The notes beneath the pieces were generated by a model. The model was given only the letters and a program-made list of their open reading frames with translations, did no database searches and was not told the DNA's origin. Below, piece by piece: positions 1-30,862 of a stretch of 64,000 nucleotides of DNA. The stretch comes from Pavona decussata. Lineage: Eukaryota. The DNA lies in NCBI GenBank assembly GCA_977016875.1, contig CDRNST010000051.1:2542001-2606000 (forward strand), given 5' to 3'. Every line of letters starts with the position of its first letter. Positions within the stretch are counted from its first letter, which is position 1. A program made the translations under genes and the position numbers.

Positions 1-749
1 CGCAGGGGGAGGAAAGATTGCATGACGAGCTAAAAGAGCGTCTACGAATGACGCTAATGACCACCCATAATTTACCCAGCTGCTGCTAGCCTGCTGAAAA
101 TGAATTAAGAAATTAATTCAATAAAGCTAAATAATAACAAAGAGATTTACGTTGCCGCCAAGGAGAAGTTGCCCTTCTCGATCATCCATCAAAGAAGCGT
201 TGCGTGACGACCCTAATAATGGCTGCGTAGGAGACCAACAAGCCACAGGCAACATAAAATTCGGCGATCGACGAAAGGTATTAAACAATGGTATTTTGAC
301 TTATTAGTTATCTTCCTCAGTTTCTAAAGGGAAATTTCATTACTTTACTTACCTGTAACATTTGTTCCATAATTGACACGATCGACAAAGAGGGAATTTT
401 TGTTCCGTGCTGAGAGTGAAGATTTCCCGGCAATATTAAGATCTCAAGAGCCATTCCTGCATAAGAGCAGGTTCGGTTTATTTTCTTAAGAGATGTTCTA
501 TGATTAGTATCATCAATTTTATTTATCTGTGACTGACAAATTTACAACTTTGAAACTATATAAAAACTGTGTTTTGCTTTTCTTTCTTTTTTTTTTTTTT
601 CTACACTTCCTTCGTGGTCCCTTAAGTAGCTCCGTTTTCATCTGTTTTTGGTTGTTATGCCATTTTTGATATTTTAAAAAATACACAATTGTAACAGTTA
701 CTCTTGCGTGACGTATCGTCACGCGAGGAATTGATCCGTACCTTTTTCG

Positions 750-1476
750 ACAAAAGTTATCTTTTTTATCGCTCTTGATTATTTTCTTCGTTTTATTTGT
801 GTTATTTAAATGGCCTGTCGTGTTCAGAGTATCCCGAAAATCCGAAAACTGTTTTGTGCACAGTCCTGCTTCTCCAAATTTGAGTCCAGCAGGTTGTAAA
901 ATACAGTGTATTGGAAAGGAGGGAAAGGAAACCGCGACTTATGTAGCAGCGTTTTACAAAGACGACTGGCCGGAAGAACTTGTCGACAACATGAAAGTTG
1001 CTGCGTCAATTTTGAAAAGGCACGACCATCCCAAAACTTTGGACAGAGAGAAAGGAAGACACCTTCATATCTCATTCGACTACTATTGCTGTTACACGGA
1101 AGAAGAGGCAGTGAAAATCGGAAAGTTTTTGAAACTTATTCTTGGACACCTCGCGAGGTATGGTTTGATAATATAAAATGTGCAATCCACGGTTATGGTG
1201 ATGCAGTTTCGCTTGTCCTCGTGGCTGACAAGAAATCACAACAGGAGTTGACTCGCTAAGTACTGAAGAACGAGCGAGATCTTGAAGCCAGGACACGTTT
1301 AAAGAAAAACATTCCACGCACGCAACTACAAGACTTTCATATCACACTTGGAACAGTAAATGAAAGCAGTTTTCCAGTGCAGTCGGCAGTTAAGGAAATA
1401 AACAGAGTTATTCCACCTGGAAAATGGCACAAATCCCCTTTTTTTTCTTCAACAACCAGTTTTCCAAGGGCTGTGA
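750..1476 (+). pseudogene. Pseudogene of membrane-anchored 2H-phosphoesterase (copy A)
   Basis: Aligns to intact 6378..7142. The ATG-containing ~60 bp (ttgacaggtcagccATG...) is deleted, there is a 1-nt deletion at ~1134 (gaaacttattc vs gaaaagttattc), and TGG>TAA at 1257-1259. The first motif HLHISFDYYCC is still readable. It ends at the homologous TGA 1474-1476. Confidence 0.85.
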
Positions 1477-1598
1477 GAGGGCTCATTTGATTTCCTCTAG
1501 TATCTTTCTGTTGCGTGACTTTCTCGATTCTCGGTTTATTATGGTGTAGACAAGTCACGTGATAACATATTGCACCAGTATTGAACAAGAGGGAGGAT

Positions 1599-2384
1599 AT
1601 GTTTTGTGGACGTCTAAGTCAATCAAACTTCTTTCTTTTATCACTTTTAGTTGTTTTTGTCGCAGCAATTTTGCTCTTTATATGGCCCCTTTTCAAGGAA
1701 TCCCTCAAATCCGAAAAATGTGTGGTGTACAGTCCAGCGTTTCCATCTGAAGGTGGTCCGGGATGTAGCCCACGGTGTATTTCAAGAAAGGTAGAGGAAG
1801 CCACGCGGTCTTATGCTGCTGTATTTTACAACAAATTTCATTCTTGGCCGAGTGAACTTATTGAGAACATGAAAATCGCTGCGTCGATTTTGAAACAGTT
1901 CGGCCAACCGCATAGTTTAGACACGGAGGGAGGCCGAGATCTTCATGTCACGTTTGACTACTATTGTTGCTACACGGAAGAAGAAGCCGTGAAAATCGGG
2001 AAGTTTTTGAAAAGTTATTCTTGGACACCTCATGAGGTGTGGTTTGATAAGATAGAATGTGCAATCCACGGTTATGGTGATGCAGTTTCACTTGTGCTCA
2101 TGGCTGACAAGAAATCACAAAAGGAGTTGACTCGCTGGGTATTGAAGAACGAGCGAGATCTCGAGGTCTCAACAGGTTTAAAGAAACACATTCCACACAC
2201 GCAACTACAAGACTTTCACATCACACTTGGAACAGTAAATCAAAGCAATTTTCCAGTGCAGTCGGCAGTTGAGGAAATAAACAGAGTTATACCACCTGGG
2301 AAATGGCATAAATCTCCTGTTTTTCTTCAACGACCGATCTGCAAGAGATGTGAGAAGGTGATGGAACGAAATACACAGAGATAA
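1599..2384 (+). CDS. Signal-anchored 2H-phosphoesterase-family protein (copy B), single coding exon
   Basis: First ATG at 1599 (MFCGRL), hydrophobic anchor FFLLSLLVVFVAAILLFIW, motifs LHVTF and FHITL about 90 aa apart, NQS sequon, 8 Cys after the anchor. Confidence 0.85.
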   Translation: MFCGRLSQSNFFLLSLLVVFVAAILLFIWPLFKESLKSEKCVVYSPAFPSEGGPGCSPRCISRKVEEATRSYAAVFYNKFHSWPSELIENMKIAASILKQFGQPHSLDTEGGRDLHVTFDYYCCYTEEEAVKIGKFLKSYSWTPHEVWFDKIECAIHGYGDAVSLVLMADKKSQKELTRWVLKNERDLEVSTGLKKHIPHTQLQDFHITLGTVNQSNFPVQSAVEEINRVIPPGKWHKSPVFLQRPICKRCEKVMERNTQR

Positions 2385-2686
2385 CTTGTCTTAAAAATGA
2401 TTATAATTTTATTATTTTATTTCGTTGGTTTATCCAAACACACGCGACTGGCTTCTCTTCTTGCTAAAATTAACATTTTAACGTATTATCTATTTTAATT
2501 TTTTTGATATTTTATATTGTTTGAATTGATATCGTTTATACTGTCGAAACCTTCACTATGTCGACTCCATGACTCTCCTGGTCTCTTGTCGCTTCTCGTG
2601 TTGCAATACCGACGATCACGTGATGTTTTGGATGAAAAAATCACGTGATCACAAAATTTACCTCCAGCTTTGAGGAAAAGGAAGTT

Positions 2687-3529
2687 ATGTTATATACACG
2701 TTGCTGTCAACAAAATTTCGTTCTTTTATTATTCTTGGTTATTTTTGTCGTTTTAGTTTTGATCTATAAATGGCCTTTCAAATTATCACGCGAATCCGAA
2801 AAATGTCTGCTATATAGCCCGGCATTTCCGTCTGAAGGTGGTCCGGGATGTAGTCCACGGTGCTTTGCAAAAGATGGGAAGGAAACGAGTAGGTATGGAG
2901 CAGCATTTTACAAGGAATTTCATTCTTGGCCGAGTGAACTTGTCGAGAACATGAAAATCGCTGCGTCGATTTTGAAACAGTTCGGCCAACCGCGTAGTTT
3001 AGAAACGGAGGGAGGCCGACATCTTCATGTCGCGTTTGACTACTATTGTTGCTACACGGAAGAAGAAGCCGTGAAAATCGGCAAGTTTTTGAAAAGGTAT
3101 TCTTGGAAACCTCATGAGGTGTGGTTTGATAAGATGGAATGTGCAATCCACGGTTATGGTGATGCAGTTTCACTTGTGCTCATGGCTGACAAGAAATCAC
3201 AACAGGAGTTGACTCGTTGGGCACTGAAGAACGAGCGAGATCTTGAAGTCGCAACAGGTTTAAAGAAACATATTCCACACACGCAACTGCAAGACTTTCA
3301 CATGACTCTTGGAACAGTAAATCAAAGCAGTTTTCCAGTGAAGTCAGCAGTCGAAGAGATCAACAGAGTTATTCCACCTGGAAAATGGCACAAAACGCCT
3401 GTCATCTTCAACCGACCGGTTTGCAAGAGATGCGAGAAGGTGATGCAAGCAGCATTCCCCGGGATAACTGAGCCTTCATTTGAAGTCGGTCTTCGACAAA
3501 AACAGGTGGATAAAAGGAGAGATAAATAA
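2687..3529 (+). CDS. Signal-anchored 2H-phosphoesterase-family protein (copy C), single coding exon
   Basis: ATG 2687 (MLYTRCC), anchor FVLLLFLVIFVVLVLIY, motifs LHVAF and FHMTL, NQS sequon, extended C-terminal tail. Confidence 0.85.
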   Translation: MLYTRCCQQNFVLLLFLVIFVVLVLIYKWPFKLSRESEKCLLYSPAFPSEGGPGCSPRCFAKDGKETSRYGAAFYKEFHSWPSELVENMKIAASILKQFGQPRSLETEGGRHLHVAFDYYCCYTEEEAVKIGKFLKRYSWKPHEVWFDKMECAIHGYGDAVSLVLMADKKSQQELTRWALKNERDLEVATGLKKHIPHTQLQDFHMTLGTVNQSSFPVKSAVEEINRVIPPGKWHKTPVIFNRPVCKRCEKVMQAAFPGITEPSFEVGLRQKQVDKRRDK

Positions 3530-4413
3530 CCAGTTAAATAGCACGAATCCTCTGTTTTTAGCCTGCAAATGAGTCGGACTTCCGAGCGTTGTTTCACCCC
3601 GCCAAAAAAAATATCGACAGCGTGAAACAGCGATGTCTTCTAAGGAACTTGAAGGGGCTAGGGAGTGAGGCCTCTTTCTACTAGCTGTGGAATTTTTTGA
3701 CCCAAATTCGTATCTTTCTAAGCGTTTTTTTTTTGTAAAAGAAGATAAATGGTCTACTCCATGTAACTAAAGGTAAATGGTTGAATCCTAATGTATAAAT
3801 CCAGTAATTACGCTATTTATTAGGTAAGCAAAATTATATTTAATTATTGTTTGCTTCTTTATTTAAGATTTCACAATTGAATTTCTTTCATATTTGTACA
3901 TTTTCTTTATTAAATGAAATGCATGCAATGTAAATGCTTACTGTGTATTTATTTGAAACTTATTTCTTGCGTGAAAGTTCTGTCACACAATTTATCTTTT
4001 GTGTTGTGATTAAAATGTAAACAAACCCATGACCACGTAACCTCCCTTGGAGACGTCCCTTTGGCTCGTCACGCAGTGGGTGGAAAGATTGCGTGACGAG
4101 CTACATATGTGTCTGCAAGGGAGGCTAATGACCATCCATAATTTACCCAGCTGCTGGTAGCCTTCTAAAAATGAATTAAGAAATTAATTTAATAAAGCTA
4201 AATAATAACAAAGAGATATACGTTGCCGCCAAGGAGAAGTTGCCCTTCTCGATCATCCATCAGAGAAGAGTTGCGTGACGACCGTAATAATGGCTGCGCA
4301 GGAGACTAACAAGTCACAGACATATAAAATTCGGCGATCGACGAAAAGTATTAAGCAATGGTATTTTGACTAATTAGTTATCTTTCTAAAGGGAAATTTC
4401 ATTACTTTACTTA

Positions 4414-4914
4414 GCCCCAGTTCAGACGCTGAACTTTTCATGAGCCAAACTTAATTCAAATTAAGGTCGGCCCAAATCACGAAAATCCCGCTTTTTGATT
4501 CAGACGCCGAACTTAATTAGCCGAACTTAAAACCAATCGAAATGTTAGCGTTTGTTTTTTTTTTTTTTTAAATTTTTTTTATTTGAAATACATTATAATA
4601 ATTTATGCATTAGGTTCTTAATTAGCCGAACTTAAAACCAATCGAAATGTTAGCGTTTGTTTTTTATTTTTTAATTTTTTTTATTTGAAATATGTTACAA
4701 TAATTTATGCATTAGGTTCGGCTCATGAAAAGTTCGACGTCTGAATCAAAGCTGTTCCAAAGCCGAAATTCCCGGCTGAGCTAGGCGGGAAGAACGGCTG
4801 AGCCGTTCCAAATTGGAACAGCCATTCTTAACTGAGTCAGACGCCGAACTTTTCATGTACTTAATTCGAGGTATTAGGTTCGGCTCACGAAAAATTCGGC
4901 GTCTGAACCGGGCC
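4414..4914. mobile_element. Non-autonomous PIF/Harbinger-like MITE
   Basis: TIRs GCCCCAGTTCAGACGCTGAA / rc GGCCCGGTTCAGACGCCGAA, TTA duplication at 4411-13 and 4915-17, and an empty site in unit 1 (~349-351). Contains an internal ~105-bp direct repeat. Confidence 0.85.
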
Positions 4915-5249
4915 TTACTTGTAATATTTGTTCCATAATTTACACGATCGACTAAGAGGGAATTATTGTTCCCTGTTGATTTCCCGGCAATATTAAGATC
5001 ACAATAGCCATTCCTACATATGAGCATGTTCGGTTTATTTTCTTAGAGATGTTCTATGATTAGTATCATCAATTTTATTTATCTGTGACTGACAAATTTA
5101 CAACTTTGAAACTTTATACAAACTGTGCTCTGTTTTTTTCGTTTTTTTTTTTTTTGTCCGGTTTGTTTGTTTTTTTTTTTACACTTACTTCGTGGGCCCT
5201 TAAGTTGCTCTGTTTTCATCTGTTTTTGGTTGTTGTGCCATTTTTTATA

Positions 5250-6030
5250 CAGGCGAACCTCCCTTTGCGACCATCTCTCGTAAGCGACCACCTCTCATTA
5301 GCGACCACTTTTCTAAAATACCAAAAGTTTTCAAGTCAAATCACTATAGATGGAACCTCTCATAGGCGACCACCTCCCGTTAGCGACCACTTTTAGAGAT
5401 TTTCAATTGTTTTTAACCTCCCGTTGGCGACCACTTGACACACAATCTGCTGTCTCTCTCAAGGGCGGAAATTGACTGTAACAAAAATTGGCCCACATCA
5501 TTACAGCGGATGCCGTATTAAAATCTCACAGCCGGAGCTACCGGAAGTGTCCCCCGACATTGAAAGAAATGAAAACATATACATGCACCATAACCAGGTT
5601 GAATCCTTTAAAGGAAAGAAATTCTCTTATCTTGTAAATAGCATGCATGTACATGCACGACCGGTGATGACTCTCTCACCTTGTATTATTCAACTGAAAA
5701 ATTGTGGCGGTTAAGAACGTCAACTGGATTATGTAACAAACAAACAAACGCCAAAGTTGTTGATGTGTTACGCTTGAAATGTAACATTGAGAAAATGCCG
5801 TTTACTGTTTGCTCCTAAATGATAAAATCAGGCAGTCTAAAGAAAAGTTTTTACTTTGGGTTTTGATAAGCACTGGCAAAAGTGTTAGGTGTCCACAATT
5901 ACCATATGTAAATTACCCGAAATTTAGACCTCCCTTCGCCCCCCCCCCCCCCCCCCCTTGTGGTCTGACCTCTGGTAAGCGACCACATATCCTTGCCATT
6001 ATGGGTGGTCGCTTACGGGAGGTTCGACTG
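5250..6030. mobile_element. Non-autonomous Tc1/mariner(pogo)-like MITE
   Basis: TIRs CAGGCGAACCTCCC / rc CAGTCGAACCTCCC flanked by TA. Repeated gcgaccac subterminal motifs. Absent from the unit 1 homologous site (~670). Confidence 0.85.
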
Positions 6031-6046
6031 TATTTTAGATACTCAA

Positions 6047-6282
6047 TAGGCCATTTTACAGTTGTGTGCTAAGTGACCTGGCCTTGGATTGTAAGCAAGG
6101 CTGGGGGTGACCTTGTTTTGATACAAACCTCACTGCTTTTCATATGTAGATCATGCTGTTTTTTTGCTAACTAGTTTCATTTACATATGGAAAGCAGTGT
6201 GGTTTGTATCAAAGAAGGTCACCCCCAGCCTCGCTTCCAATCAAGGCCAGGTCAATAAGCACACAACTGTAAAATGACCTGT
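6047..6282. mobile_element. Palindromic (hairpin) MITE
   Basis: ATAGGCCATTTTACAGTTGTGTGC ... GCACACAACTGTAAAATGACCTGT, self-complementary along most of its length. Absent at the unit 1 site caattgtaac (~686-695). Confidence 0.8.
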
Positions 6283-6377
6283 TGTAACAGTTACTCTTGC
6301 GTGCCTTTGATCACGAACGTATTGTCACGCGATGAATTGATTTCTACCTTGATATTGTGATATTTGACAGGTCAGCC

Positions 6378-7142
6378 ATGTTGTTTCAGTTGTTTGCACG
6401 AATCGGTCAACAGAAGTTGTTTCTTTTATCGCTCTTGATTATTTTCTTCGTTTTATTTGTGTTATTTAAATGGCCTGTTGTGTTCAGGATATCCCGAAAA
6501 TCCGAAAAATGTTTGTTGTACAGTCCTGCTTTTCCAAACTTGGGTCGAGCAGGTTGTAAAATACGGTGTATTGAAAAGGAGGGAAAGGAAACCGCGACTT
6601 ATGTAGCAGCGTTTTACACAGACGACCATGACTGGCCGGAAGAACTTATCGACAACATGAAAGTTGCTGCATCAATTTTGAAAAGGTACGGCCATCCGAA
6701 AACTTTGGACACAGACAGAGGAAGACACCTTCACATCTCATTCGACTACTATTGCTGTTACACGGAAGAAGAGGCAGTGAAAATCGGAAAGTTTTTGAAA
6801 AGTTATTCTTGGACATCTCATGAGGTATGGTTTGATAAAATAGAATGTGCAATCCACGGTTATGGTGATGCAGTTTCGCTTGTCCTCATGGCTGACAAGA
6901 AATCACAACAGGAGTTGACTCGCTGGGTACTGAAGAACGAGCGAGATCTCGAAGTCAAAACAGGTGTACAGAAGCACATTCCACACACTCAGCTGCAAGG
7001 CTTTCACATGACACTTGCAACAGTAAATCAAAGCAGTTTTCCAGTGCAGTCGGCAGTTGAGGAAATAAACAGAGTTTTACCACGTGGAAAATGGCACAAA
7101 TCTCCTGTTTTTGTTCAACAACCGGTTTTTCAAGGGCTGTGA
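6378..7142 (+). CDS. Signal-anchored 2H-phosphoesterase-family protein (copy A'), single coding exon
   Basis: gccATG at 6378, anchor LFLLSLLIIFFVLFVLF, motifs LHISF and FHMTL, NQS sequon. Confidence 0.85.
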   Translation: MLFQLFARIGQQKLFLLSLLIIFFVLFVLFKWPVVFRISRKSEKCLLYSPAFPNLGRAGCKIRCIEKEGKETATYVAAFYTDDHDWPEELIDNMKVAASILKRYGHPKTLDTDRGRHLHISFDYYCCYTEEEAVKIGKFLKSYSWTSHEVWFDKIECAIHGYGDAVSLVLMADKKSQQELTRWVLKNERDLEVKTGVQKHIPHTQLQGFHMTLATVNQSSFPVQSAVEEINRVLPRGKWHKSPVFVQQPVFQGL

Positions 7143-7276
7143 GAGGGCTCATTTTATTTCCTCTACGTATTTTTCTTTTGCGTGACTTTCTCGTATGGAG
7201 GCGTCAAGTCACATGATAAAATGTTCCTTTTTCGTGGCAGAGTGATATTGCACCAGTATTGAACAAGAGGAAGGAT

Positions 7277-8062
7277 ATGTTTTGTGGACGTCTAAGGCAA
7301 TCAAATTTCTTTCTTTTTTTACTTTTGGTTATTTTTGTCGAGGCAATTTGGCTCTTTAAATGGTCCCTTTTCAAGGAATCCCTCAAATCCGAAAAATGTG
7401 TGGTGTACAGTCCAGCGTTTCCGTCTGAAGGTGGTCCGGGATGTAGCCCACGGTGTATTTCAAGAAAGGAAGAGGAAGCCACGCGGTCTTATGCTGCTGT
7501 ATTTTACAACAAATTTCATTCTTGGCCGAGTGAACTTATTGAGAACATGAAAATCGCTGCGTCGATTTTGAAACAGTTCGGCCAACCGCAAAGATTAGAC
7601 ACGGAGGGAGGCCGAGATCTTCATGTCGCGTTCGACTACTACTGCTGCTACACGGAAGAAGAAGCCGTGAAAATCGGGAAGTTTTTGAAAAGTTATTCTT
7701 GGACACCTCATGAGGCGTGGTTTGATAAGATGGAATGTGCAATCCACCGTTATGGTGATGCAGTTTCACTTGTGCTCATGGCTAACAAGAAATCACAACA
7801 GGAGTTGACTCGCTGGGTACTGAAGAACGAGCGAGATCTTGAAGTCGCAACAGGTTTAAAGAAACACATTCCACACACGCAACTGCAAGACTTTCACATG
7901 ACTCTTGGAACAGTAAATCAAAGCAACTTTCCAGTGCAGTCGGCAGTCGAGGAAATTAACAGAGTTATACCACCTGGGAAATGGCATAAATCTCCTGTTT
8001 TTCTTCAACGACCGATCTGCAAGAGATGTGAGAAGGTGATGGAAGCAAATACACAGAGATAA
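7277..8062 (+). CDS. Signal-anchored 2H-phosphoesterase-family protein (copy B'), single coding exon
   Basis: ATG 7277. Termini nearly identical to 1599..2384. Motifs LHVAF and FHMTL. Confidence 0.85.
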   Translation: MFCGRLRQSNFFLFLLLVIFVEAIWLFKWSLFKESLKSEKCVVYSPAFPSEGGPGCSPRCISRKEEEATRSYAAVFYNKFHSWPSELIENMKIAASILKQFGQPQRLDTEGGRDLHVAFDYYCCYTEEEAVKIGKFLKSYSWTPHEAWFDKMECAIHRYGDAVSLVLMANKKSQQELTRWVLKNERDLEVATGLKKHIPHTQLQDFHMTLGTVNQSNFPVQSAVEEINRVIPPGKWHKSPVFLQRPICKRCEKVMEANTQR

Positions 8063-8292
8063 CTTGTCTTAAAAATGATTATAATTTTTTATTTCGTTGG
8101 TTTATCCAAACACACGCGACTGGCTTCTCTTCTTGCTAAAATTAGCATTTTTACATATTAGTGAGGTGGTAATAGTTATTAACAGTTATTGTATTCGCAT
8201 ATAAGTTGTTACAGAAGTTTTTTGTTTACTTGTTCATACACACGCCTTGATGGACGAGCATATCTTAGCTCCTATGAATTGATACCGTTTGT

Positions 8293-9103
8293 GTCTAGGT
8301 CTTTGGGTCCCAGAGACCTAGAAACGTAGAGACCCAAAGTCCCAAAGACCCCCAGGGGCCCCACTCACATATTTTAATGAGGGGTGGGGTAGGGGGGGGG
8401 TCCGACAGAGGTTCATATTTTATACCCCCAAAAATCCCAACTTCAGAATTTGTCTACCCAAAAAAATCCCTACTTTTTGTAGCATACCCAAAAAAATGGC
8501 ACTTGATAGAAAATCAGCCTCTGCTAAGAGAGATCTACAAAGACCCTTTCCTACTTTCGTACAGAAAAGGAAGATCTTTGTGAAATATGTACTCGTAAGA
8601 GCAAATTGCTTTGAAGGTCATATTCTTCTTATCTCGACCAATAGGTGCCGTGTTTGGCCTGTCATCATTATTTTACCATCACTGTGTTTTCATTGTGGTC
8701 TTGATGACTGGCTTGAAAGGCCTTGAATTACGTGACCTATTGAATATTTCTCTCTGGATTAGATGCACGTGGAGTGCCGGTAATTACTTTTCAAATAGAT
8801 TACAATCTCAGAAATATCCCATAATACCACACAAGCAGTAAATTGCACTTATGTTATTGTTGATTTGAGCTGATGAAAAATACAATACCAGAAAAAATTC
8901 CTGTGTTGTTTTCGCAACCCAAAAAAATCCCGGTGTCTTTCATAGACCCAGAAAAATCCCTTTTGGCCAAAATGTCAGACCCAAAAAAATCCTTCAGACC
9001 CCCCCCCCCCCCCCCCCCACCGTCATTAAAATATGTGAGTGGGGGCCCTGGGGGTCTTTGGGTCTCTACGTTTCTAGGTCTCTGGGACCCAAAAGACCTA
9101 GAC
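8293..9103. mobile_element. Composite foldback/MITE element with ~85-bp terminal inverted repeats
   Basis: 8293-8380 (gtctaggtctttgggtcccagagacctag...cccaggggccccactcacatattttaatga) is the reverse complement of 9023-9103. Internal cccaaaaaaatccc repeats. Confidence 0.8.
8493..8670 (+). mobile_element. Penelope-like retroelement 3' fragment nested in the MITE
   Basis: Translates to KWHLIENQPLLREIYKDPFLLSYRKGRSL, then after a frameshift ..VLVRA. This resembles, from recall, the C-terminus of cnidarian Penelope-like RT ORFs. Confidence 0.6.
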
Positions 9104-9264
9104 GTGACGACTCTCTGATGTCACTGGTGCATTTTTCTCCACACATAAGCGATTTGTATCTGACTATTGTGAATTACCTGACTCTTGTCATTTCTTATTA
9201 TTGCGTGAGTTTGAAGTCAGGATAACGTAATATTTTAGATGAAAAAGATCATGTGATCACAATC

Positions 9265-9586
9265 TGGGATGGGGAAGGGGGAGGGTCTCGTATGAAAGGG
9301 GCAGGGATGCTCACTGGAAATTTTGTATTATCAGTAAACCCCTAAAGGGGACCATTCTGGGCGTGGGCCCAAGCTTTTTTTGGCCACCAAAAGAGACCAT
9401 TTTAAAGACAAATATATATTTTTATATGTCTTTGCGTGCAACCCTAAACGAGACCTTCACGGCTAAATATAATGGCGTTTTGCCCAGAACACCCTAAGTG
9501 AGACCAAAATCCGAAATTTACACCCCAAAGCGAGATAAAGAGCATCCCCACCCCACTCATATGAGAGTACCACTCCCCCCCCCCCC
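9265..9586. mobile_element. Non-autonomous DNA element with G/C-run termini
   Basis: Flanked by the direct repeat gatcacaatc (9255-9264 and 9587-9596). It interrupts the promoter region of remnant C'. Confidence 0.7.
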
Positions 9587-9638
9587 GATCACAATCCTGC
9601 ATTATTGCAATCTACCAGTTTTTAGCACAAAGGAAGTT

Positions 9639-9720
9639 ATGTTTTTTAAATGTTGTTGTCATCGAAATTTCTTTCTTTTAATATTCTTGGTTATTTTTTT
9701 TTGTGTTATTTATAAACCGT
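9639..9720 (+). pseudogene. 5' remnant of 2H-phosphoesterase copy C' (gene body deleted)
   Basis: MFFKCCCHRNFFLLIFLVIFFCVIYK matches the copy C N-terminus MLYTRCCQQNFVLLLFLVIFVVLVLIYK, and the upstream aggaagttATG context is conserved. Sequence at ~9780-9820 resembles the region downstream of copy C (~3885-3930), implying an internal deletion. Confidence 0.7.
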
Positions 9721-10722
9721 TAGTATTTCAGCTATTTATATATTTATGCATGTCAACAAAATTACAATTTTGTAGCTTTTCTTATTTGTATAGTTTCTTC
9801 ATTTAATGAAATACAAGCAATATAAGTAGACTTTAAGAGGTACCAGTACTTACAATAGCTATAGGTAAGGTTAGACTTTATTTTACAAGGGTAAGACTTA
9901 ATAGCGACTAAAATTATAGCCTGCGAGCAAGCTCTGTATTAGGTCAACTGCTGCTGACTCTTAGAGAACTTGTTCACAGGCTACTAAAATTACTGATAAA
10001 CTTGTGGCCCTCAAAAAAGCAAAAATACAAATTAAATCAAAATCAAAAACCTTTGATTTATATGAAGCCATTAATACAAAAAAAAAACATCTATAATAAA
10101 AGTTAAAATGTTAAAAATAGTCAAAAAATGGAAATAGCGATAAGGGAACTTAAAAATTGTGAAGTTTGAATGATTCAAATTAAAATGGCTCAGAATTTAG
10201 TTTTAATGGGTAAAATAATTCATTTTTACTGTCAAGATCCGATCCTCGATCCCTTATCTCCGATCCGAATTTTCCAGAAAACGGCGGTTTCCCTATTCAT
10301 AAATAGGAATACGCAACAAGAACATTTTATCTAAATACCACTAGAAACAAGTTTTCTGTCCCCTAGATAATTTAATGGTGTTTTCAAGAGCTATTTCTGG
10401 AAGCTAATGTTTTTTATTTCATGGGCTTGCGCTCAGCGCTTAAGCGCAGTGACAGTGCACTTGGGTTTGTTGCGTGACACTTCTGTCAATTTGTATTTTT
10501 TGGAGCTGCAATTTGCCGTGATATAAGTGTAATATTCAGATGACGCCCTAAAATTAATGCTATTGCTACCCTTGCGGTCAATACAACTGAGCAATAGTAA
10601 AGAGAAATGAAGAAAAATACATTGTACGTTTCCGCTACGAATTTTGGTATCTACTTTGGTCTACTTTCATTACGCACCAGGGCGTTCCAGAGGTTGTTGT
10701 TGTCCGTTCCGTTTCCGATAAC

Positions 10723-19603: not shown

Positions 19604-22600
19604 GCTACCATCGTCATCATCATCACGTGTTAACCCATGGATTCAATAGCCCTTGTCAAGATCTTCTTTTCCTGCATAGCCTTTAATCCGCGCAAAATGT
19701 CTTTGAATTAGTAGGCGCCGTCCTTAAGAAATCAGAGTTCTCGGACTATCCCAAGATGTGCGCCATGTAATGCGCAGTAGCAAAAAAAAGAAAAAAAAAA
19801 ATCGGGCTTTCTTCTGACAACTGCTTAAGTTGTGTAAATAAGTGCCAGGGTCTTTCTTCTATTTAATCTTTCACCCGCAGTTCAAATATATGTTTCATAT
19901 ATTCATGTTCAGATATCTTCTTTGTAAGAGATTCTTATATGTACGGCTGCCTAAACATCGCAGTACTACTTTCTTTAAAGGTGCACAATTTCTACGTGGC
20001 CGCTGGCTTTAATTCTGGTGGTATCGCCAACGCAGGAGGAGCTGGAATGGCCCTTGCAGAGTGGATCACAGCTGGAGAGCCCACAATGGACCTCTCATCT
20101 GTGGACATACGCCGCTTTGCCCCTCATCACAACAACAAGCGCTTCTTGCAAGAGTGCGTCAAGGAGACACTAAGCTGGCATTACCTTCTGCGATTCCCGT
20201 ATTCAGAGAGGATGCGCGCGCGTGGTATCAGATGGTCACCGCTGTACTCAGATCTGGATGCCGCTGGTGCGTCATGGGGCGATAAGATGGGATGGGAGGT
20301 TGCCAAGTGGTTTTCGCTTCCTGGAGAAGGTAAGAAGTTTGGGACACGTGAATTGACAGCTCTTCGAGTCTGCTACTGTTCACCAGTCAACTTGAATAAG
20401 TCTAGATGTTCACTACCGATTCTCAAGCGATATATTATGTGATTTTTTCATAGAACAAGAAAGAAATAACGAACAGTTAGCATTCAACATGTCACATGAG
20501 ACAAAGCAAAAATCTGATCACCTTACGGCAGTTGAACCCGTTACTTTCAAACACAGGTTGCGCGCATGCTCTAACCACTGAACCATTGGGAGACTAGGTT
20601 ATTTACTAAGTCCAAATGTGACATCAGCATTCACGAAAGCGTCCTGTGTGGTGAGATAGAAAGTGCTAAAGGAAAGAAGAAAAGAATGGAAGGGAAGGAG
20701 GGAGGGAAGGACGTTTTTAAGCTCGGTCATGGATAAGGAACATTTATAAAGTTTTTTGTTGATTCTCGCGTATCAAATGTGTCGTGCCGATCCATTTTTC
20801 CAAAGTTATTCTGCTCATTGTTTGTTTTTTGGTTCCCTGATTTTCCTTTATTATGTCGCAGTGCCCCGAAAACGAAACAATTCGCGCTGAAGGCTGTTGC
20901 GAGTAAGTTGTATGCAGCGGATGTAGGCAAACGTTTTATGTGTAAATCGGCCATTAGATGACCCCCTTTGTGTCCCATAATTGGTCTGTGTTGTTGTTAC
21001 ACATACAAATAGTCAGCAGTTTTTGGTCATAAACATTATTGAGTAAAAGCAATATTTCTCAGGTGTTCGTTTTGTTTTATTAGACCACCCTCCTGGGAAT
21101 GGATTTGGCAAACCGAGCTGGCTTAACAGTATGGAACTGGAATATAAAGCTTGCACTGAGGGGGTGGGTGTAGTGGACTTGACCTCTCTTGGTCTGTTTG
21201 AAATTGAGGTAAGGCAAACATCAGCCCACTACAGGTGAAGCTCTGCGTACGAAAACCTTCACACTGATACGTACCTCTCCTTATTACGGGCAGTTCACTT
21301 GGCTCCAGTGAACTTTACGATCGCGCCTCCACATCCACGTTAAAGAATGAACCATTCTTTTCCAATTAGAGAGAGAAACAGCATACTTGCAAGTCTCTTC
21401 AACTTAATTCTTTCTTTTAGAACTCTATAAGGTCAACATGTTTTCTCTCTTTGCAGTCTCCCAAAGATGGTGAGTGTGAGGGTTTTCTTCAGTACTTGTG
21501 TTCCAGTGATGTCTCTATGCCCGTGGACCACGCTGTACACACACTGGTGCTTAATAAACGGGGAGGAATAGAACTCAAGTGTACTGTGTTAAGAAGTACA
21601 TACAACAGGTGGGATTATCCATATAGTGTACAAGAGTTAAGACAGCATCATATCGTTCCTTTCGGTATCCATAGCTTGTAAAGCAGATACGCAACGGGAG
21701 ATGAAGAACCTTTCTCTAGCTTCGCTTCCTTCTGAACAGTTGATTATCTAAAGGGAGTATCTAAGGCAGATTCCAAGCTAAGTCATAGAAACGAAATGTT
21801 TTTTCGAAATTTTTACTTTGGATAGGAAAAATTATAGTCTTTGGTTTCTTTGTTTCTGCGTTCATTGAGTTCTTCACTTGGTCATTTCAAAATAATTGTG
21901 ATCCAACCAATCAGAGCATACATACTGCTTTTTCAACCAATCAGATGCAAAGGTTAAGTCAGATGTTACCTGAATTACGCGACTTTTCCCGCGCTTGGCA
22001 CCGTTTGCATGTTTTTACCAAGAGTTCAGGGACCAGATTCACCATGCCTTCCTAAGTTAAGATGCATCCTTAGTATAATTTCATAACAATAGCCTATTGT
22101 TAGACTAACAATAGGCTATTGTTAAGAAACAATACTAAGTAATATATCAAACACGAGGAAGAGTGTTTCCTCCGATTTCCAAACACCGAGAAGTAGGTTA
22201 AAAAGACGAGGCGCAGCCGAGTTTTTTTTAACCAATTTCGAGGTGTTTCGAAATAAGAGGAAACCCTCTTTCGAGTGTTTGATATAGCTTCCCAAACTAT
22301 TGATAATTCTTGGAGAAATTCGAAGCAAAAGTTCACAAAATTTTATGATAATTAAGATCACATTTCTAAACCTCCTTCACGGTAGTGATTTGCTTTGTTT
22401 TGGCTTGATGAATCATAAATGAGTTTGAGAAGGAGACATCTTAGGAAGGCTTCCTGAATGTGGCCCCTGATTCGTTTATTTCGGTTTTTGCTTTGATGTT
22501 TGCTTTGCCTGGCAGTAGTCTATTTCTTGTAACTTGGCTGGTTTCATTTTATACAAAGCGGATGCTGTGGAAAGCTGATCCAGCTTTTCCTTCTTTTTTC

Positions 22601-25228
22601 TCCTTTAATAGATTCCTAATTTTGCTGCATGATTCAGAACGCGTCACTTTTGCTCAGTCATTGATCTCAAGGAACATCCCAGCAGACTCTGCCATCACGC
22701 TCCGGAATATCCAATCAGCAAACGTTATTCTAGGAATCTTAGGCCCTAATTCACGTCAGTTGCTTCAAAGTCTGACCCAGACCTCCATGGACGTTAATCA
22801 ATTCCCAGCAAACTCGGCAAAGGTAAATGTTATTCATGCTGGTGTAAGTTATACTGCATAATGCTTAACTGTTTGTGCCCGACTTCAAAACGTATGGAAA
22901 TTACACGTGGTTTGGAGGTTAAAAGATATGGCGTCTTCAAATGTTTCTAATGTTGTTACATTTTGTTGGCTCAATAATTAATGTTAAAGAGTTTAGCACT
23001 CCATATTAGATGATGTTTGGAGAACATTTTTTGTTGTGTGAATGTTTTGTGTTCAATCAAACATTTTGGTCAAAGTTGTCCTGTTATCAGATGACGTGTA
23101 GCCTCGCTTCCAACATTGTTAAACAGGAAATTCCGGTATGAAGGGTGCCTGGCCTGGGCTTTCTCACCTTCAGTTGTCAATCAACATCAAACGTAAACAA
23201 CTGAAAAACAACATGCGTCTTTTTCTACGGCCCCTACAAATAAGCTTGGCTTAGTTTTCGAACAAACCCTGTTAACCGAATTAGAAACCGAGGTCTTATA
23301 TTACTGTGGTATATTATGAAATTTTGAGGCGTATCTTTTCTGAGGACGCTTGAGTAAACAAATTGCTTCGACTGAACGTAACTTTGTATTTCACACCAAC
23401 AAAGGTGTGAAAGGAAGGGAAGGGCTTGCCCTTTTATAGCGGAACTTTTTGTTTAAACAACAAATGTTGGATGTGTTGTACCACAATGTTAGAACATTTT
23501 GCTGGGGTTTACGTTTCTCATGAGTTAAGGCCAATTGTTTATAAGGTTAGCTCTTATAAGCTGGCTAATCAGCGATAGTAAAATCAGTATTTAATTTGTT
23601 TGCCATAGAATAGACAGTTGACGAGTAAACCTGTTTTTAAACTTTATCTACAGCAAATCGACTTGGGCTATGCTTCGGGTGTGAGGGCATTCAGAACCAG
23701 TTGCTTTGGCGACCATGAAAACGACTGGAAACTTTTAGTCCCCTCTGAGGTGAGGTGTAGGCCCTAAATTTGATTGAGAAATGTGTTTGATTTTGTTTGT
23801 TTGGTTGTTTGTTTTGGATAGATGCTATCTCCAATTTACACCCTCGTGGGTATTTTAACACGAAAAGTAATAACTCACAACTTTTTCCAAAAAGCAAAAC
23901 CCCCGGAATATGAAAGGCGGCCGTCACTTATATGGCCTATGTGTGGACACTTACAAAAAGATGAATCACTTATCATTAACCCCTGAACCCCTAATATCAA
24001 AGAACAAATTCTCCTATCTTGTCCCCATACTTTTCTTATGAAAGTACTGGGGAGAAGTTATTGAAATATCAAGAAAATTCACCTTGGGTGATCCTACCTT
24101 TTATTCTCCTAACCTCAGGGGTTGAATAAGTATTGATATTACAAGGAGAAATTTGATGCTGATCACTGTTAGAGCTTAAAGGGTTAATGCCCTCTTTTTA
24201 TTTTTGCAGTTTGCAGTTTGTTTGTACCGTGATCTAATGGAGGCCGGGAGAGATCTCAGTGTTAGGAACGTAGGTCGATCAGCAGTTGATTGTTTACGTA
24301 TAGAGAGAGTGATTCCTCAGATGGGGAGTGAGCTGACATCCTTTGTCACCCCGAAGGAGGCGGGCTTAATGGACTGGGTACAACTACATAAGGTATGGTT
24401 CAAACATTGGTACTCTAATTAATAGATAGAGTGCAAACTCTGTATCTATCACAGTTGATAGATTAATTTTGCTTCGATAAAGCCTATTTTCTCGTGGCTA
24501 TCAAGAATAGCCACTTTAAAAGGCCATTAATTTGTCCATTCATCACTTTTTTCCTTTCGCACCATTAGACAGAGGTAGAGGAGTAGGGAGGTAGTTGTAC
24601 ACTTAACTACTAGTCTACTACCGGAGTGTTACCACACGAAGAAGCGTCGTTTGCAGTGTGGTTTCCCACTTGAATACAAAATGTAGGAAGAACGCATGAA
24701 GGAGTAACGCCTGTTAGATGTGACTAGAAAATGCGCACAAATGCTCTAATGTACGTGATCAAGATAGGGCAAGATAGGAGCACCTGATTGTTGTCTTCAG
24801 TACTGAAAGGTAACAGAGTTCTTGCTGTTAAGCTTTTTACTCGTTTCCTTGCACAGTTTTTGTTCGTTTGGCACACTGATTTCCACGACGTTTATGCTTA
24901 GCTCAAAGATAGTTCCTTTTCTCTTTCTTAGACTTGCGATTTTATCGGGAAACAAGCTTGCCTTGATGCGCAAGACCAACATGAAAAGAAACGCCTTGCC
25001 TGCATCACCCTTCAAGAACACGACGACGACAACTTCCCGTGGGGAGGGGAGCCGATTCTTAGAAATGGTTCGTTAGTAGGATCGACGACAAGTGCTTGTT
25101 ACAGCTTCAAGGCAGGCCGGCCAGTCTGCCTGGGATACTTACAGGGGGAGACCAAGGACTCTGTTGATCAAGATGGAAGACATGAGATTGAAATTGCTGG
25201 TAGCTTGTTTCCTGTTTCGTTGTCTTAG
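10723..25228 (+). CDS. PDPR: Pyruvate dehydrogenase phosphatase regulatory subunit-like mitochondrial flavoprotein (DMGDH/SARDH/PDPR family), 17 exons, ~854 aa
   Basis: Phase-consistent GT-AG exons: 10723-10769, 12740-12946, 13527-13660, 14756-14837, 15437-15521, 16748-16829, 17417-17538, 17950-17970, 18783-19029, 19331-19455, 19981-20329, 21084-21208, 21457-21608, 22612-22822, 23654-23749, 24210-24392, 24932-25228 (2565 nt). Motifs: [16 protein letters not shown] (FAD binding), [53 protein letters not shown] (PDPR-like GCV_T C-terminus). Exon 1 is the least certain. Confidence 0.85.
13898..13960. repeat. (TAA)n microsatellite
   Basis: Direct reading, in PDPR intron 3. Confidence 0.95.
19528..19625. 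repeat. (CAT)n microsatellite
   Basis: Direct reading, in PDPR intron 10. Confidence 0.95.
20485..20600 (-). mobile_element. Degenerate tRNA-derived SINE
   Basis: Minus strand shows an A-box-like cagTGGTTAGAGC and a B-box-like GGTTCAACTGCC. It does not form an intact cloverleaf. Confidence 0.5.
22138..22430. mobile_element. Truncated non-autonomous DNA transposon (GTAATATATCAAACACG end)
   Basis: Terminal motif agtaatatatcaaacacg with an internal inverted counterpart gagtgtttgatata (~22274-22287). Source of the spurious ORFs 22100-22361. Confidence 0.5.
23980..24183. mobile_element. TTAA-flanked (piggyBac-type) MITE
   Basis: TTAA|CCC...GGG|TTAA ends. Near-identical second copy at 33922-34118 and degenerate relatives at ~11335-11443, 26080-26241, 34957-35290 and 42210-42400. 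Confidence 0.8.
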
Positions 25229-28214: not shown

Positions 28215-30862
28215 CTAAGGCGTATTGAACAGTTTCTTCTTGAACCACGCCCGTTCCATTTTCTCGTCTCTTTTTTGTTTTGTTTCAAAAAATTTCTCAG
28301 CCGCCTCTTCTCGCAGTCGATTCTCTCGGGCCAAGGCCTCCTCGTCCTTGCTTCGCAGCCACTCCTGGTATTTTTTCAAAGCTGCAGCTTTTCTCTCCTC
28401 GCTGTGCTCGCCGGGTTTTCCCCTGAACGCTTCCCCAGCTCTAAATTCGTGTTTATCCCCAAGCCACTCTCCGTGTGTTTTACCTATTAATTGGCGCCAG
28501 CTTTCCTCTTTCCTCTTCACTGTTGCTTCCTGTTTCGCTTTCTCCGCCAATAGCGTTTGCTTTCTCGCTATTGCTGCTTCTTTGTCGGTCAACCACATCT
28601 GGAATGTCTTCCGACGTCGTGACGTCTGCAGAAAGCGCGCCAATTTTTCGTTTTCATCTTCGGATGACGAATCGTCGTCGTCGTCGGACTGGTCAAACTG
28701 GTTTGTCTGGTTTTTCACGACTGTCTTCCATACGTTCCAAGGCTTGTTTTCGCGCGGTTCGTAGTGAGCCATGAGAAACTCTCTCATCTCACTGCTCATT
28801 TTTCGGGTCCTGAAAATCATTTAATATGTCATTAGTAGCGTTCCACTGTTGTTGTTGTCGTCGTCGCCGACGTCGTCATCATCGTCACCGTCATCATCAT
28901 CATCATCATCATCATCCGAAAGATAATTTGTCACTGTCATTTGTAATTTGAGGGCTCAAGGGAGAACGGCACTTATTTCAGTTTTGCTCTAAGCGTTGAC
29001 GATATATGAACAGTAACAGGGACTGTAGTAGTAAATTATGGGGAAGGTTGGAAACCAATAAGCGAATCTCAAAATACACGGCTATTCTACTTCATCAATC
29101 TCCCCGGTGTCAATCACAAACTCCGGACAGGAAAACCTGTTGGAATCGAGAAGGAATTACTGCGGAAACAGATTCCCAGAATAATAATAATGATGATGAT
29201 GATGATGATGATGATAAGAGATTCACATTCATCGTTCAGTGTTTTCAGGGAGGTCCTCTCTTTGTGAGTTGAAATTTAAAGATACAAATAAAAAATACAA
29301 CGACAAGTGAAAGGGGTGCCCAGTCGTGTGTTGCTTTGTAATGTTCCCTTTTTTTTTTTTAATTTATTTGTTGTTACATACCTGGTGGCTCCATTTTCTC
29401 TTCCGTGATAGGTATTCGCTCTCGTCTTCTGCTGTTCAGGTGAGCTAGGAACACGGAAGACCTTTCTTCTGAAGGCCGGGGAGCCACTCGGTGAACCCGG
29501 CAGGGTCGCTAAGGGAGACCGGGCACGAGGAGCCGATGAGGACCTCGGGCAAGGACATGTCGGGGATCTGGGTCGTAGATTTGGACTTCCGGGCCTCTCC
29601 GTGTTGAGCAGTGAGGGAACAAGTTTTCGGCCCATGCGTGGGGAATTCATCGGCGATGATGGCTGTGTGTTCACTCTGGGAAGTTTTTCCTCCGTTTGCT
29701 TGACTCCTGAAACAATTTTGCCGCTAAGCGGTCGTATTTCTTCCGCACATATAAGCTTGGCTTTAGCAGAAGTAGGCCTGTCATGAATGTTGAGTGACCT
29801 GGTTCCTCTGAGTGGTATATGTAACTTAAGGTCAGGATTTAAATCTCTTTTCAGCTTCCTATGAGATGAAGCGTGCGCCGTGGAAGGTCTCTTTGTCAAA
29901 TCAACTTTAGTTTCTCTTGTTTGCCCGATCTCTTCTCCCATCATTTCATCCATCCTTGCTTTGTTTTTGTCGTCGTGAACAACTGAACTTTCTTTCGATC
30001 CATTTTGATAAACTTCATCGTTTTTCTTAAATTTCTCCACTAGGTTGCTCGCACCGTTCCCATCCCCCTGGATCGTGCCATCAGCAGAGGAATTGTCTGG
30101 CTCCTTAACGTCATTCTCCGAAGATTTTCCGACGTTAGTGTCGTCTTCCGAAGATCCCCGAGCTTCCAATTCGACGTACTTGTCGAAAAGTTCCATCAGA
30201 CGGGGATGGTTGCTGGTTTTTGCCATTTCCATTGGTGTGACACCCTGGTGATCAGCTCGCGACAAAAGAGAAGAACCGTCGTTCATGAATAACGCCGCAG
30301 CGCATGAGAAATTCTCGCCGGTCACAGCGGCGTGCAAAAGCGTGCGGCCGCTGCATTGCACGGTTTGTTCGACGTCGATTTTGAAATCGCTGTTAAGCAA
30401 GCTCTGCAATAACTGGCCATCGCCTTTTTGCGCCGCTATGAAAGCGGCGACAAACGCTCTCTGTTCGCTGGAGATCTGGTTCATTTTAATCTCGATCCGC
30501 TTCAATATCTGGCGGTTGTCCCTCTTCATGCACCTGTCCACAAACCGCTGCCACCACGGCGGAATACTCAGTTCTAGAGTCATAGATGCAAGGTCTAGCC
30601 GGGTGTCTATGTCCGCCATCTTTGTCTCATCCTTGAGTTCAACAGCACTGTTGTCGCCTTGGTTGTGCACAAGTGTAAACAAATCCGATGGTACCCCACT
30701 CTTCAACTCCACAATCATCTTTAAATCACGCACACTCCACGAACGTTTTGCTTGAAAACTTGCGGTTTCCCCAGTTGGCAACTGAACATGTACTTCCAAG
30801 CCATCAGACTCCTGTAGTTGTCTTGGCGACTGGCTCTGACCGTCTCCTTCGTGCCCTTCCAT
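28215..30862 (-). CDS. Ubiquitin-like + ankyrin-repeat protein (ANKRD60/ANKUB1-like) with C-terminal W-rich coiled coil, paralog 1 (~691 aa, 2 coding exons)
   Basis: Exons 30862-29382 and 28809-28215 joined by a phase-2 GT-AG intron (ag|gtatgt ... ttttcag|g). Ubl: VHVQLPTGET...SVRDLKMIVELKSGVPSDL. Ankyrin: QRAFVAAFIAA, GRTLLHAAV, GVTPMEMA. Confidence 0.8.

Follow-up and report, generated by a model that had tools for sequence, protein, structure and literature searches.

To our knowledge, all characterised 2H phosphoesterases reside in the cytosol, the nucleus or the mitochondrion. Outside this superfamily, PLD3 and PLD4, glycoproteins of type II membrane topology, have a short tail in the cytosol and a luminal nuclease domain that works in lysosomes alongside RNase T2. 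A 2025 study of vacuolar RNA salvage in Arabidopsis expected a luminal cyclic-nucleotide phosphodiesterase to follow RNase T2, stated that no such enzyme had yet been identified, and regarded 2H members as candidates (PMC12369478); as cited there, an extracellular or vacuolar cyclic-nucleotide phosphodiesterase activity of plants likewise stands without an assigned gene (Abel et al. 2000, cited in PMC12369478). Here we describe a tandem array of intronless genes in the coral Pavona decussata, part of which lies in a 64,000-nt stretch of contig CDRNST010000051.1 (positions 2,542,001 to 2,606,000 of the forward strand, assembly GCA_977016875.1; "the window" below). Their products are predicted to be membrane-anchored 2H phosphoesterases, and we propose that they act outside the cytosol, hydrolysing the 2′,3′-cyclic phosphates generated by RNase T2, a reading to which, role included, we assign a probability of roughly 0.4.

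Four intact open reading frames (ORFs) on the plus strand of the window belong to a single family, are intronless and share 70–92% pairwise identity (Table 1; gene coordinates are counted from the conserved ATG). Pairwise Nei-Gojobori ratios of nonsynonymous to synonymous divergence (dN/dS) between paralogues had a median of 0.30, or 0.25 in the domain, with values of 0.10/0.41 for the domain and 0.28/0.49 for tail plus anchor. As ratios this low are not those of chance ORFs, they indicate that the array consists of coding genes maintained by purifying selection. When the entire genome (602 Mb) was searched, all 13 matches fell at one locus, C51:2535923-2550059, on the contig of the window, and four further intact copies and one further pseudogene were located within the 10 kb that precede the window (C51:2535914-2541400). 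The full array thereby comprises eight intact and at least three broken copies in ~16 kb. A first, sequence-only reading of this DNA had counted six loci, four of them intact, which agrees with the window itself (four intact ORFs, one pseudogene and one 5′ fragment) and falls short of the about 11–12 loci of the whole array, since copies continue upstream. Segmental duplication units hold one or two genes, e.g. window positions 747-2488 vs 6407-8160 (87–90% identity). Because other cnidarian-like assemblies carry single genes or small tandem sets (one copy each in L029 and L030, two in L028 and four in L008), the eight-fold expansion is local to the P. decussata lineage; it arose by segmental duplication.

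Pfam searches with the four window proteins (E up to 10) returned no relevant match, HVSL, LigT_PEase, 2_5_RNA_ligase2 and AKAP7_NLS included, and neither did PDB sequence searches with one window protein or with the close-family profile A2. An AlphaFold2 model of copy 1 (the product of 1581-2381, with a 41-sequence alignment as input) reached a mean predicted local distance difference test score (pLDDT) of 86.7 and a predicted template modelling score (pTM) of 0.78, with the core above a pLDDT of 90. It comprises an N-terminal helix (residues 13-42), a lower-confidence linker and two alike α+β lobes, the first with strands 76-83, 122-131 and 151-162 and helices 91-107 and 133-145, the second with strands 168-175, 213-220 and 247-249 and helices 177-198 and 226-236. 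When this model was compared with the PDB by Foldseek, all leading matches were 2H phosphoesterases, with USB1 at the top (E 2.4e-4). Re-alignment with VIA gave Z scores of 13.8 for USB1 (175 residues, root-mean-square deviation (rmsd) 3.3), 12.8 for AKAP18, 12.6 for a Pyrococcus LigT-like protein, 11.4 for Escherichia coli LigT, 11.0 for ns2 of mouse hepatitis virus (MHV) and 10.4 for the Arabidopsis cyclic phosphodiesterase (CPDase), followed by rotavirus VP3 (9.4), the penguinpox cGAMP phosphodiesterase (PDE; 9.2) and Acb1 (8.8). In an exhaustive, Foldseek-independent search of 48,161 PDB representatives, all 21 chains at Z ≥5 were 2H enzymes (top scores: USB1 13.6, AKAP18 12.8, LigT-like 12.4), and rank 22 had a Z of 4.0. 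This search is the decisive one: given the sharp gap between 2H chains and all other folds, the 2H fold is set as firmly as prediction allows, and the modelled protein clearly has it. The initial assignment of a 2H fold has therefore stood up to Foldseek, VIA and the exhaustive search; the nearest solved structure is USB1 rather than the LigT or AKAP7 named at first, though all of these lie within ~1 Z unit.

Beyond the PDB, an ESM Atlas shape search with the model likewise led to LigT and HVSL clusters, and viral 2H, LigT-like and Acb1 models were among the top matches in the viral model database BFVD; the feature search of the ESM Atlas pointed only weakly to 2H clusters, at 0.89. The presence of viral enzymes and Acb1 among these matches bears on a different reading, namely that the array encodes ecto-enzymes or luminal enzymes that degrade immune nucleotides (2′3′-cGAMP, other cGLR products or 2′-5′ oligoadenylates) and so tune or end extracellular STING-type signalling, with ENPP1 in mammals and the cytosolic viral 2H enzymes as analogues. 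The fold shared with MHV ns2, rotavirus VP3, the penguinpox enzyme and Acb1 speaks for it, as do their models in BFVD, the Acb1-bearing clusters among the language-model neighbours (again at 0.89) and the birth-and-death tandem expansion with pseudogenes, a pattern common among immune families. However, USB1, AKAP18 and LigT all match the model better than these enzymes do, the resemblance to the latter concerns the shared fold only, and the dN/dS of 0.25 in the domain gives no sign of overall diversifying selection.

Each intact window copy carries the motif LH(V/I)(T/A/S)F and, 91 residues on, FH(I/M)TL, in keeping with the superfamily hallmark of two H-x-T/S motifs ~80–90 residues apart. 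In the model, the two histidines, H122 and H213 (these and the Cys positions C47-C257 below follow the numbering of the 267-aa ORF), are each the first residue of the central strand of their lobe, as expected. Across the 40 coral-level sequences covering both motifs, neither histidine varies; motif 2 reads HxT in 40/40, and motif 1 reads HxT in 18, HxA in 12 and HxS in 10. Even among 48 distant relatives, the motif 1 histidine is retained in 41 and the motif 2 histidine in 44. When a profile of these distant members (A3) was run against 177,635 PDB sequences, only two matches emerged, both Pyrococcus LigT-like proteins (E 0.059 and 0.25). The better, marginal one (E 0.059), to PH0099 (1vdx), places motif 1 LHmsl on LHITL and motif 2 FHiTL on AHITL. 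Both histidine motifs of the first reading are in this way matched to the catalytic HxT motifs of a solved LigT-like protein. We consider it likely that the array proteins are catalytically active.

Regarding topology, each intact window copy starts with a tail of 10–15 aa followed by a 19-residue hydrophobic segment (Kyte-Doolittle mean 2.3–3.0). Family-wide, the tail is Arg/Lys-rich and ranges from 6 to ~50 aa, the 19-residue segment has a median Kyte-Doolittle mean of 2.55, and a stem of 9–35 residues connects it to the first invariant Cys. The proteins hence present a single N-proximal hydrophobic segment after a basic tail, as type II signal anchors do, and since tails reach ~50 aa, a cleaved signal peptide is ruled out in those members and a signal anchor is indicated. 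Local copies have eight Cys after the anchor, or six in the copy without the C-terminal CxxC, with additional Cys within the N-tail; C47, C62, C66, C129 and C130 are invariant among relatives of ~25–50% identity, and C160 and C257 are common. All intact window copies contain an NQS sequon; both the even Cys number (6 or 8) and the sequon reported after the anchor at the outset are found in the window copies. More generally, an N-x-S/T sequon directly after motif 2 occurs in 38 of 40 close relatives and, among the distant ones, in 18 of 48, and several distant members have an N-terminal segment resembling a classical signal peptide in place of the anchor. Taken together, the N-terminal anchor, the conserved Cys, the conserved sequon, the signal peptides of distant kin and the fusion of one of them to a secretory enzyme (see below) argue indirectly that the 2H domain probably faces the lumen of the secretory/lysosomal system or the cell exterior.

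The succession of tail, anchor, stem and catalytic domain is also the classic layout of Golgi enzymes. The array could accordingly encode a Golgi- or endoplasmic reticulum-resident type II enzyme, a 3′ exoribonuclease of USB1 type that trims luminal or extracellular RNA, or an enzyme acting on non-nucleotide phosphodiesters, in each case with a job other than cyclic-mononucleotide hydrolysis; both the rank of USB1 as top structural match and a relative that passes the HVSL model would suit such a reading. Against this family of explanations, USB1 outscores AKAP18 and LigT by a Z of only ~1, within tie range, a canonical, spliced USB1 of this genome is found on another contig, and we know of no Golgi substrate of a 2H enzyme; we regard it as rather improbable. 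The canonical USB1 (HVSL) gene lies at G000:C115:350958-352488 (L021, L022, L027), unlinked to the array, and with this separate spliced gene at hand the array was rejected as a USB1 orthologue.

The family extends well beyond P. decussata. A word-indexed search recovered 96 clusters at ≥48% identity, none of which (0/96) contains a Pfam domain; a single cluster traces to NCBI, and a single one is named (JGI 'hypothetical protein'). An exhaustive HMMER search returned 212 representatives (E up to 0.001) of 200–590 aa and down to ~25% identity. Close relatives are located on metagenome scaffolds of the TARA coral expedition. A few distant relatives showed sub-threshold matches to LigT_PEase, AKAP7_NLS and 2_5_RNA_ligase2, and one, P0242, passes the Pfam HVSL cut-off (29 vs 26.8 bits). 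Sequence profiles and the structure model together indicate that the family has diverged far within the 2H superfamily and has USB1 as its closest member. The literature searched for secreted, transmembrane and cnidarian 2H enzymes contained no description of a secretory or membrane-anchored 2H family (a CASP15 match was no more than a reference to CNPase), nor does Pfam 2025 list one, in line with the initial suggestion of an undescribed family. Logan contigs with P0011 were considered as transcripts and rejected, as they are genomic pieces with repeats at their borders.

One functional hint comes from a distant relative, P0244, which matches query residues 113-237 (E 2e-8). It combines a signal-peptide-like segment and a 2H domain with a purple acid phosphatase (Fn3-like and N-terminal domains; GDxG, GDxxY and GNH motifs), and its continuation is an ORF at 2285-2899 with Metallophos_C. 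The next gene on the same metagenome contig (L013; GROS21-1 scaffold_18312, 281-3520, from a GC-rich eukaryote) is a convergent RNase T2 (2924-3520, E 8e-41). RNase T2, cyclic phosphodiesterase and acid phosphatase are exactly the salvage chain proposed here; the fusion would supply the latter two and the neighbouring gene the first, and from its sequence the gene set looks like a compact extracytoplasmic module for RNA-to-phosphate salvage. For the immune-nucleotide reading, by comparison, no genomic or fusion context ties the family to cGLR, STING or OAS, and the one informative context indicates RNase T2 and acid phosphatase; we judge that reading unlikely.

A second, regulatory observation concerns the palindrome TCACGTGA, which forms the core of the CLEAR element found at lysosomal genes. 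It lies 44–93 nt upstream of the ATG in five of the eight intact copies, and one-mismatch variants (TCACGCGA and TCACATGA in the window) precede two others; at the eighth, U1, the nearest equivalent is a looser variant of TCACGCGTGA type. The CLEAR network, regulated by MiT/TFE factors, is defined by a GTCACGTGAC-type element near the transcription start, and the distances given here are measured from the ATG. The window contains three TCACGTGA sites against 0.88 expected, all three at most 71 nt upstream of family genes. In other species, where the flanks are no longer alignable, GTCACGTGAC was found at –68 in L002, and the box at two of the four L008 genes and at –37 in L030. The RNase T2 genes of P. 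decussata, three in tandem on the minus strand (G000:C60:4800000-4834000; L023-L026), offered a comparison: two of the three have TCACGTGA (C60:4806477 and C60:4833533) ~210 nt upstream of the signal-peptide exon (MMFVRGFVLALL...), just before the likely splice donor of the 5′ untranslated region (UTR), so that a likely 5′ UTR exon and intron precede the signal-peptide exon. Because P0244 is fused to a purple acid phosphatase beside RNase T2, and because the box is common to the array and two RNase T2 genes, we favour the RNase T2 route: as far as sequence context goes, there is some support for RNase T2 and 2′,3′-cyclic nucleotides and none for a cGAMP or 2′-5′ oligoadenylate route. Farther upstream (L011 7336-7356 and 7697-7716; G000:C51:2529336-2529716), TCACGTGA boxes occur as two tandem pairs with a spacing of 12 nt, ~6.2–6.6 kb before the first array copy, with no adjoining ORF or gene recognised.

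In the mechanism we envisage, the short basic tail would remain cytosolic and a single signal-anchor helix and Cys-rich linker would lead to a disulfide-bonded 2H domain exposed to the secretory or endolysosomal lumen or the cell surface. There, the two histidines would serve as acid and base on a 2′,3′-cyclic phosphodiester, as in the general 2H reaction. The substrates would be 2′,3′-cyclic nucleotides and cyclic-phosphate-ended oligonucleotides released by RNase T2-type acid RNases, and the monoester products would pass to acid phosphatases for salvage of nucleoside and phosphate. Taken for itself, the RNase T2-coupled role of the array proteins is a possibility we would put at a little below even. 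More tentative is the wider proposal that the family, in corals and in protists or algae, constitutes the missing lysosomal, vacuolar or extracellular 2′,3′-cyclic-nucleotide phosphodiesterase between RNase T2 and the acid phosphatases.

Several points weigh against the RNase T2-coupled, extracytoplasmic reading. When metagenomes were scanned with the 2H portion of P0244, no relative was returned, leaving the association with purple acid phosphatase and RNase T2 to a single contig, and Pfam searches on ten other long relatives revealed no extra domain. In the genome of P. decussata the array is unlinked to the RNase T2 genes (C51 vs C60). The TCACGTGA box is absent upstream of the relatives in L028, L029 and L014, its sharing by the local copies reflects common descent, and it is not specific to one factor, as USF, Myc/Max and clock factors bind it as well. 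At the protein level, the Thr/Ser of motif 1 is replaced by Ala in four of the eight local copies and in 12 of the 40 relatives, a change that could reduce activity. The same substitution could betray a largely non-catalytic, nucleotide-binding or structural pseudoenzyme on a 2H scaffold, like the AMP-binding AKAP18 central domain (Z 12.8) or a trypanosome mitoribosomal protein (Z ~11 for the mitoribosomal 2H-fold protein), both of which resemble the model. Yet in 2H enzymes the motif Thr/Ser generally helps without being indispensable, and the conservation of both histidines and of the motif 2 HxT reported above runs counter to loss of catalysis, making a pseudoenzyme quite improbable.

The charges flanking the hydrophobic segment were not decisive either, with a mean of +2.0 on the N-terminal and +1.1 on the C-terminal side among 39 sequences (the N-terminal side is the more positive in 20, the C-terminal side in 11, and the two are equal in 8). 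They favour the N-in orientation of the proposed type II secretory-pathway topology only mildly; the anchor, the invariant Cys, the sequon, and the signal peptides and secretory-enzyme fusion of distant kin favour it indirectly. The weak charge bias across the anchor in local copies would be compatible with the reverse orientation and a cytosolic domain, against which stand five invariant Cys, their even conserved number after the anchor, the conserved sequon, and distant kin with signal peptides, one of them fused to a secretory acid phosphatase. That the ORFs are instead unexpressed relics is at odds with purifying selection over eight copies and ~100 clusters and with one distant member that derives from a EukProt transcriptome assembly. 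We consider either version, cytosolic domain or relic, very improbable.

If the family is indeed the missing phosphodiesterase, its eight-fold expansion in P. decussata would help the coral to digest large amounts of RNA in phagolysosomes or symbiosomes. A conserved 2H family in the secretory or lysosomal lumen would bring the superfamily into a new compartment and provide a gene candidate for the long-postulated extracytoplasmic step on RNase T2-derived 2′,3′-cyclic nucleotides, relevant to the salvage of phosphate and nucleosides and, in animals, to the lysosomal pool of cyclic-nucleotide ligands.

The features of the array within the window are listed in Table 1. Its pseudogene consists of overlapping ORFs in two frames, the protein matching query residues 16-145 and 141-250, the second part with one TAA, and shares 86.7% DNA identity with 6407-7300. 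At the other end, an ORF at 9498-9806 starts with the tail and anchor of the array family and diverges afterwards. A transposon or viral origin of the array was considered and rejected, as the repeat units carry the array gene alone and single-copy orthologues occur elsewhere. Between the array copies, short ORFs encoding proline runs (PPPPPPPP) appear repeatedly (5809-6072, 8873-9118 and 9498-9600) and are probably pieces of a dispersed repeat flanking the duplication units. Downstream of the array, exon-sized plus-strand ORFs at 19939-20442 and 22460-22861 encode FAO_M and GCV_T domains and belong to a spliced gene of dimethylglycine/sarcosine dehydrogenase type. Three apparently intronless, paralogous ankyrin-repeat ORFs of 539, 912 and 606 aa follow on the minus strand (29276-30895, 36988-39726 and 53316-55136), the longest with an N-terminal ubiquitin domain too. 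The window includes 138 N letters.

Table 1. Array copies and upstream boxes in the 64,000-nt window (positions count from its first letter).
Feature	Position	Strand	Remarks
Pseudogene copy	754..1451 (approx.)	+	No start codon, at least one frameshift near 1137, in-frame TAA; nearest type 6378-7142
TCACGTGA palindromic E-box (CLEAR/USF type)	1555..1562		44 nt upstream of copy 1 ATG
Copy 1, intact, 261 aa	1599..2384	+	Predicted tail, signal anchor, Cys-rich linker and 2H domain; HVT at 116, HIT at 207 (ATG numbering)
Two TCACGTGA boxes	2616-2623, 2641-2648		71 and 46 nt upstream of copy 2 ATG
Copy 2, intact, 280 aa	2687..3529	+	C-terminal extension of 20 aa; motif 1 HVA
One-mismatch box variant TCACGCGA	6325..6332		53 nt upstream of copy 3
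Copy 3, intact, 254 aa	6378..7142	+	Most divergent; without C-terminal CxxC; six predicted luminal Cys
One-mismatch box variant TCACATGA	7209..7216		68 nt upstream of copy 4
Copy 4, intact, 261 aa	7277..8062	+	92% identical to copy 1; motif 1 HVA
5′ fragment, tail and anchor only, 2687-3529 type	9615..9698	+	84.5% DNA identity to 2664-2746

Among described systems, USB1/Mpn1 (HVSL, PF09749) comes closest in structure, with Z 13.6–13.8 and an rmsd of 3.2–3.3 over 175 of ~187 residues, two H-x-S/T motifs ~90 residues apart, and P0242 above the HVSL gathering score. USB1 is, however, a soluble nuclear 3′ exonuclease of U6 snRNA without anchor or disulfides, and identity to it is ~10%. LigT/ThpR and plant CPDase-type enzymes (PF02834, PF13563, PF07823) share the fold, at Z 11–12.6 to the Pyrococcus, Deinococcus and E. 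coli enzymes and 9.6–10.4 to Arabidopsis CPDase, and the chemistry proposed for the array is theirs. These enzymes, however, reside in the cytosol and are only marginally related in sequence (E 0.06), and the array family alone has the Cys-rich N-terminal linker, the membrane anchor and a vicinal CC following motif 1. AKAP7/AKAP18, MHV ns2, rotavirus VP3, the penguinpox cGAMP PDE and Acb1 have the 2H fold alone in common with it; they act in the cytosol or nucleus on 2′-5′ oligoadenylates or cyclic oligonucleotides, have no anchor and gave no sequence match.

Outside the superfamily, PLD3 and PLD4 are analogous in layout only, their phospholipase D fold and chemistry being unrelated; since they share this layout, a type II arrangement is compatible with a lysosomal nucleic-acid enzyme. 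Bacterial periplasmic CpdB resembles the array in its proposed job, the extracytoplasmic hydrolysis of 2′,3′-cyclic mononucleotides derived from RNase I/T2 ahead of phosphatases, but is a metallophosphoesterase and not a 2H enzyme. Compared with all of these, the superfamily, fold and chemistry of the array proteins are already known, whereas their predicted compartment, disulfide framework, anchor and vicinal CC after motif 1 are new.

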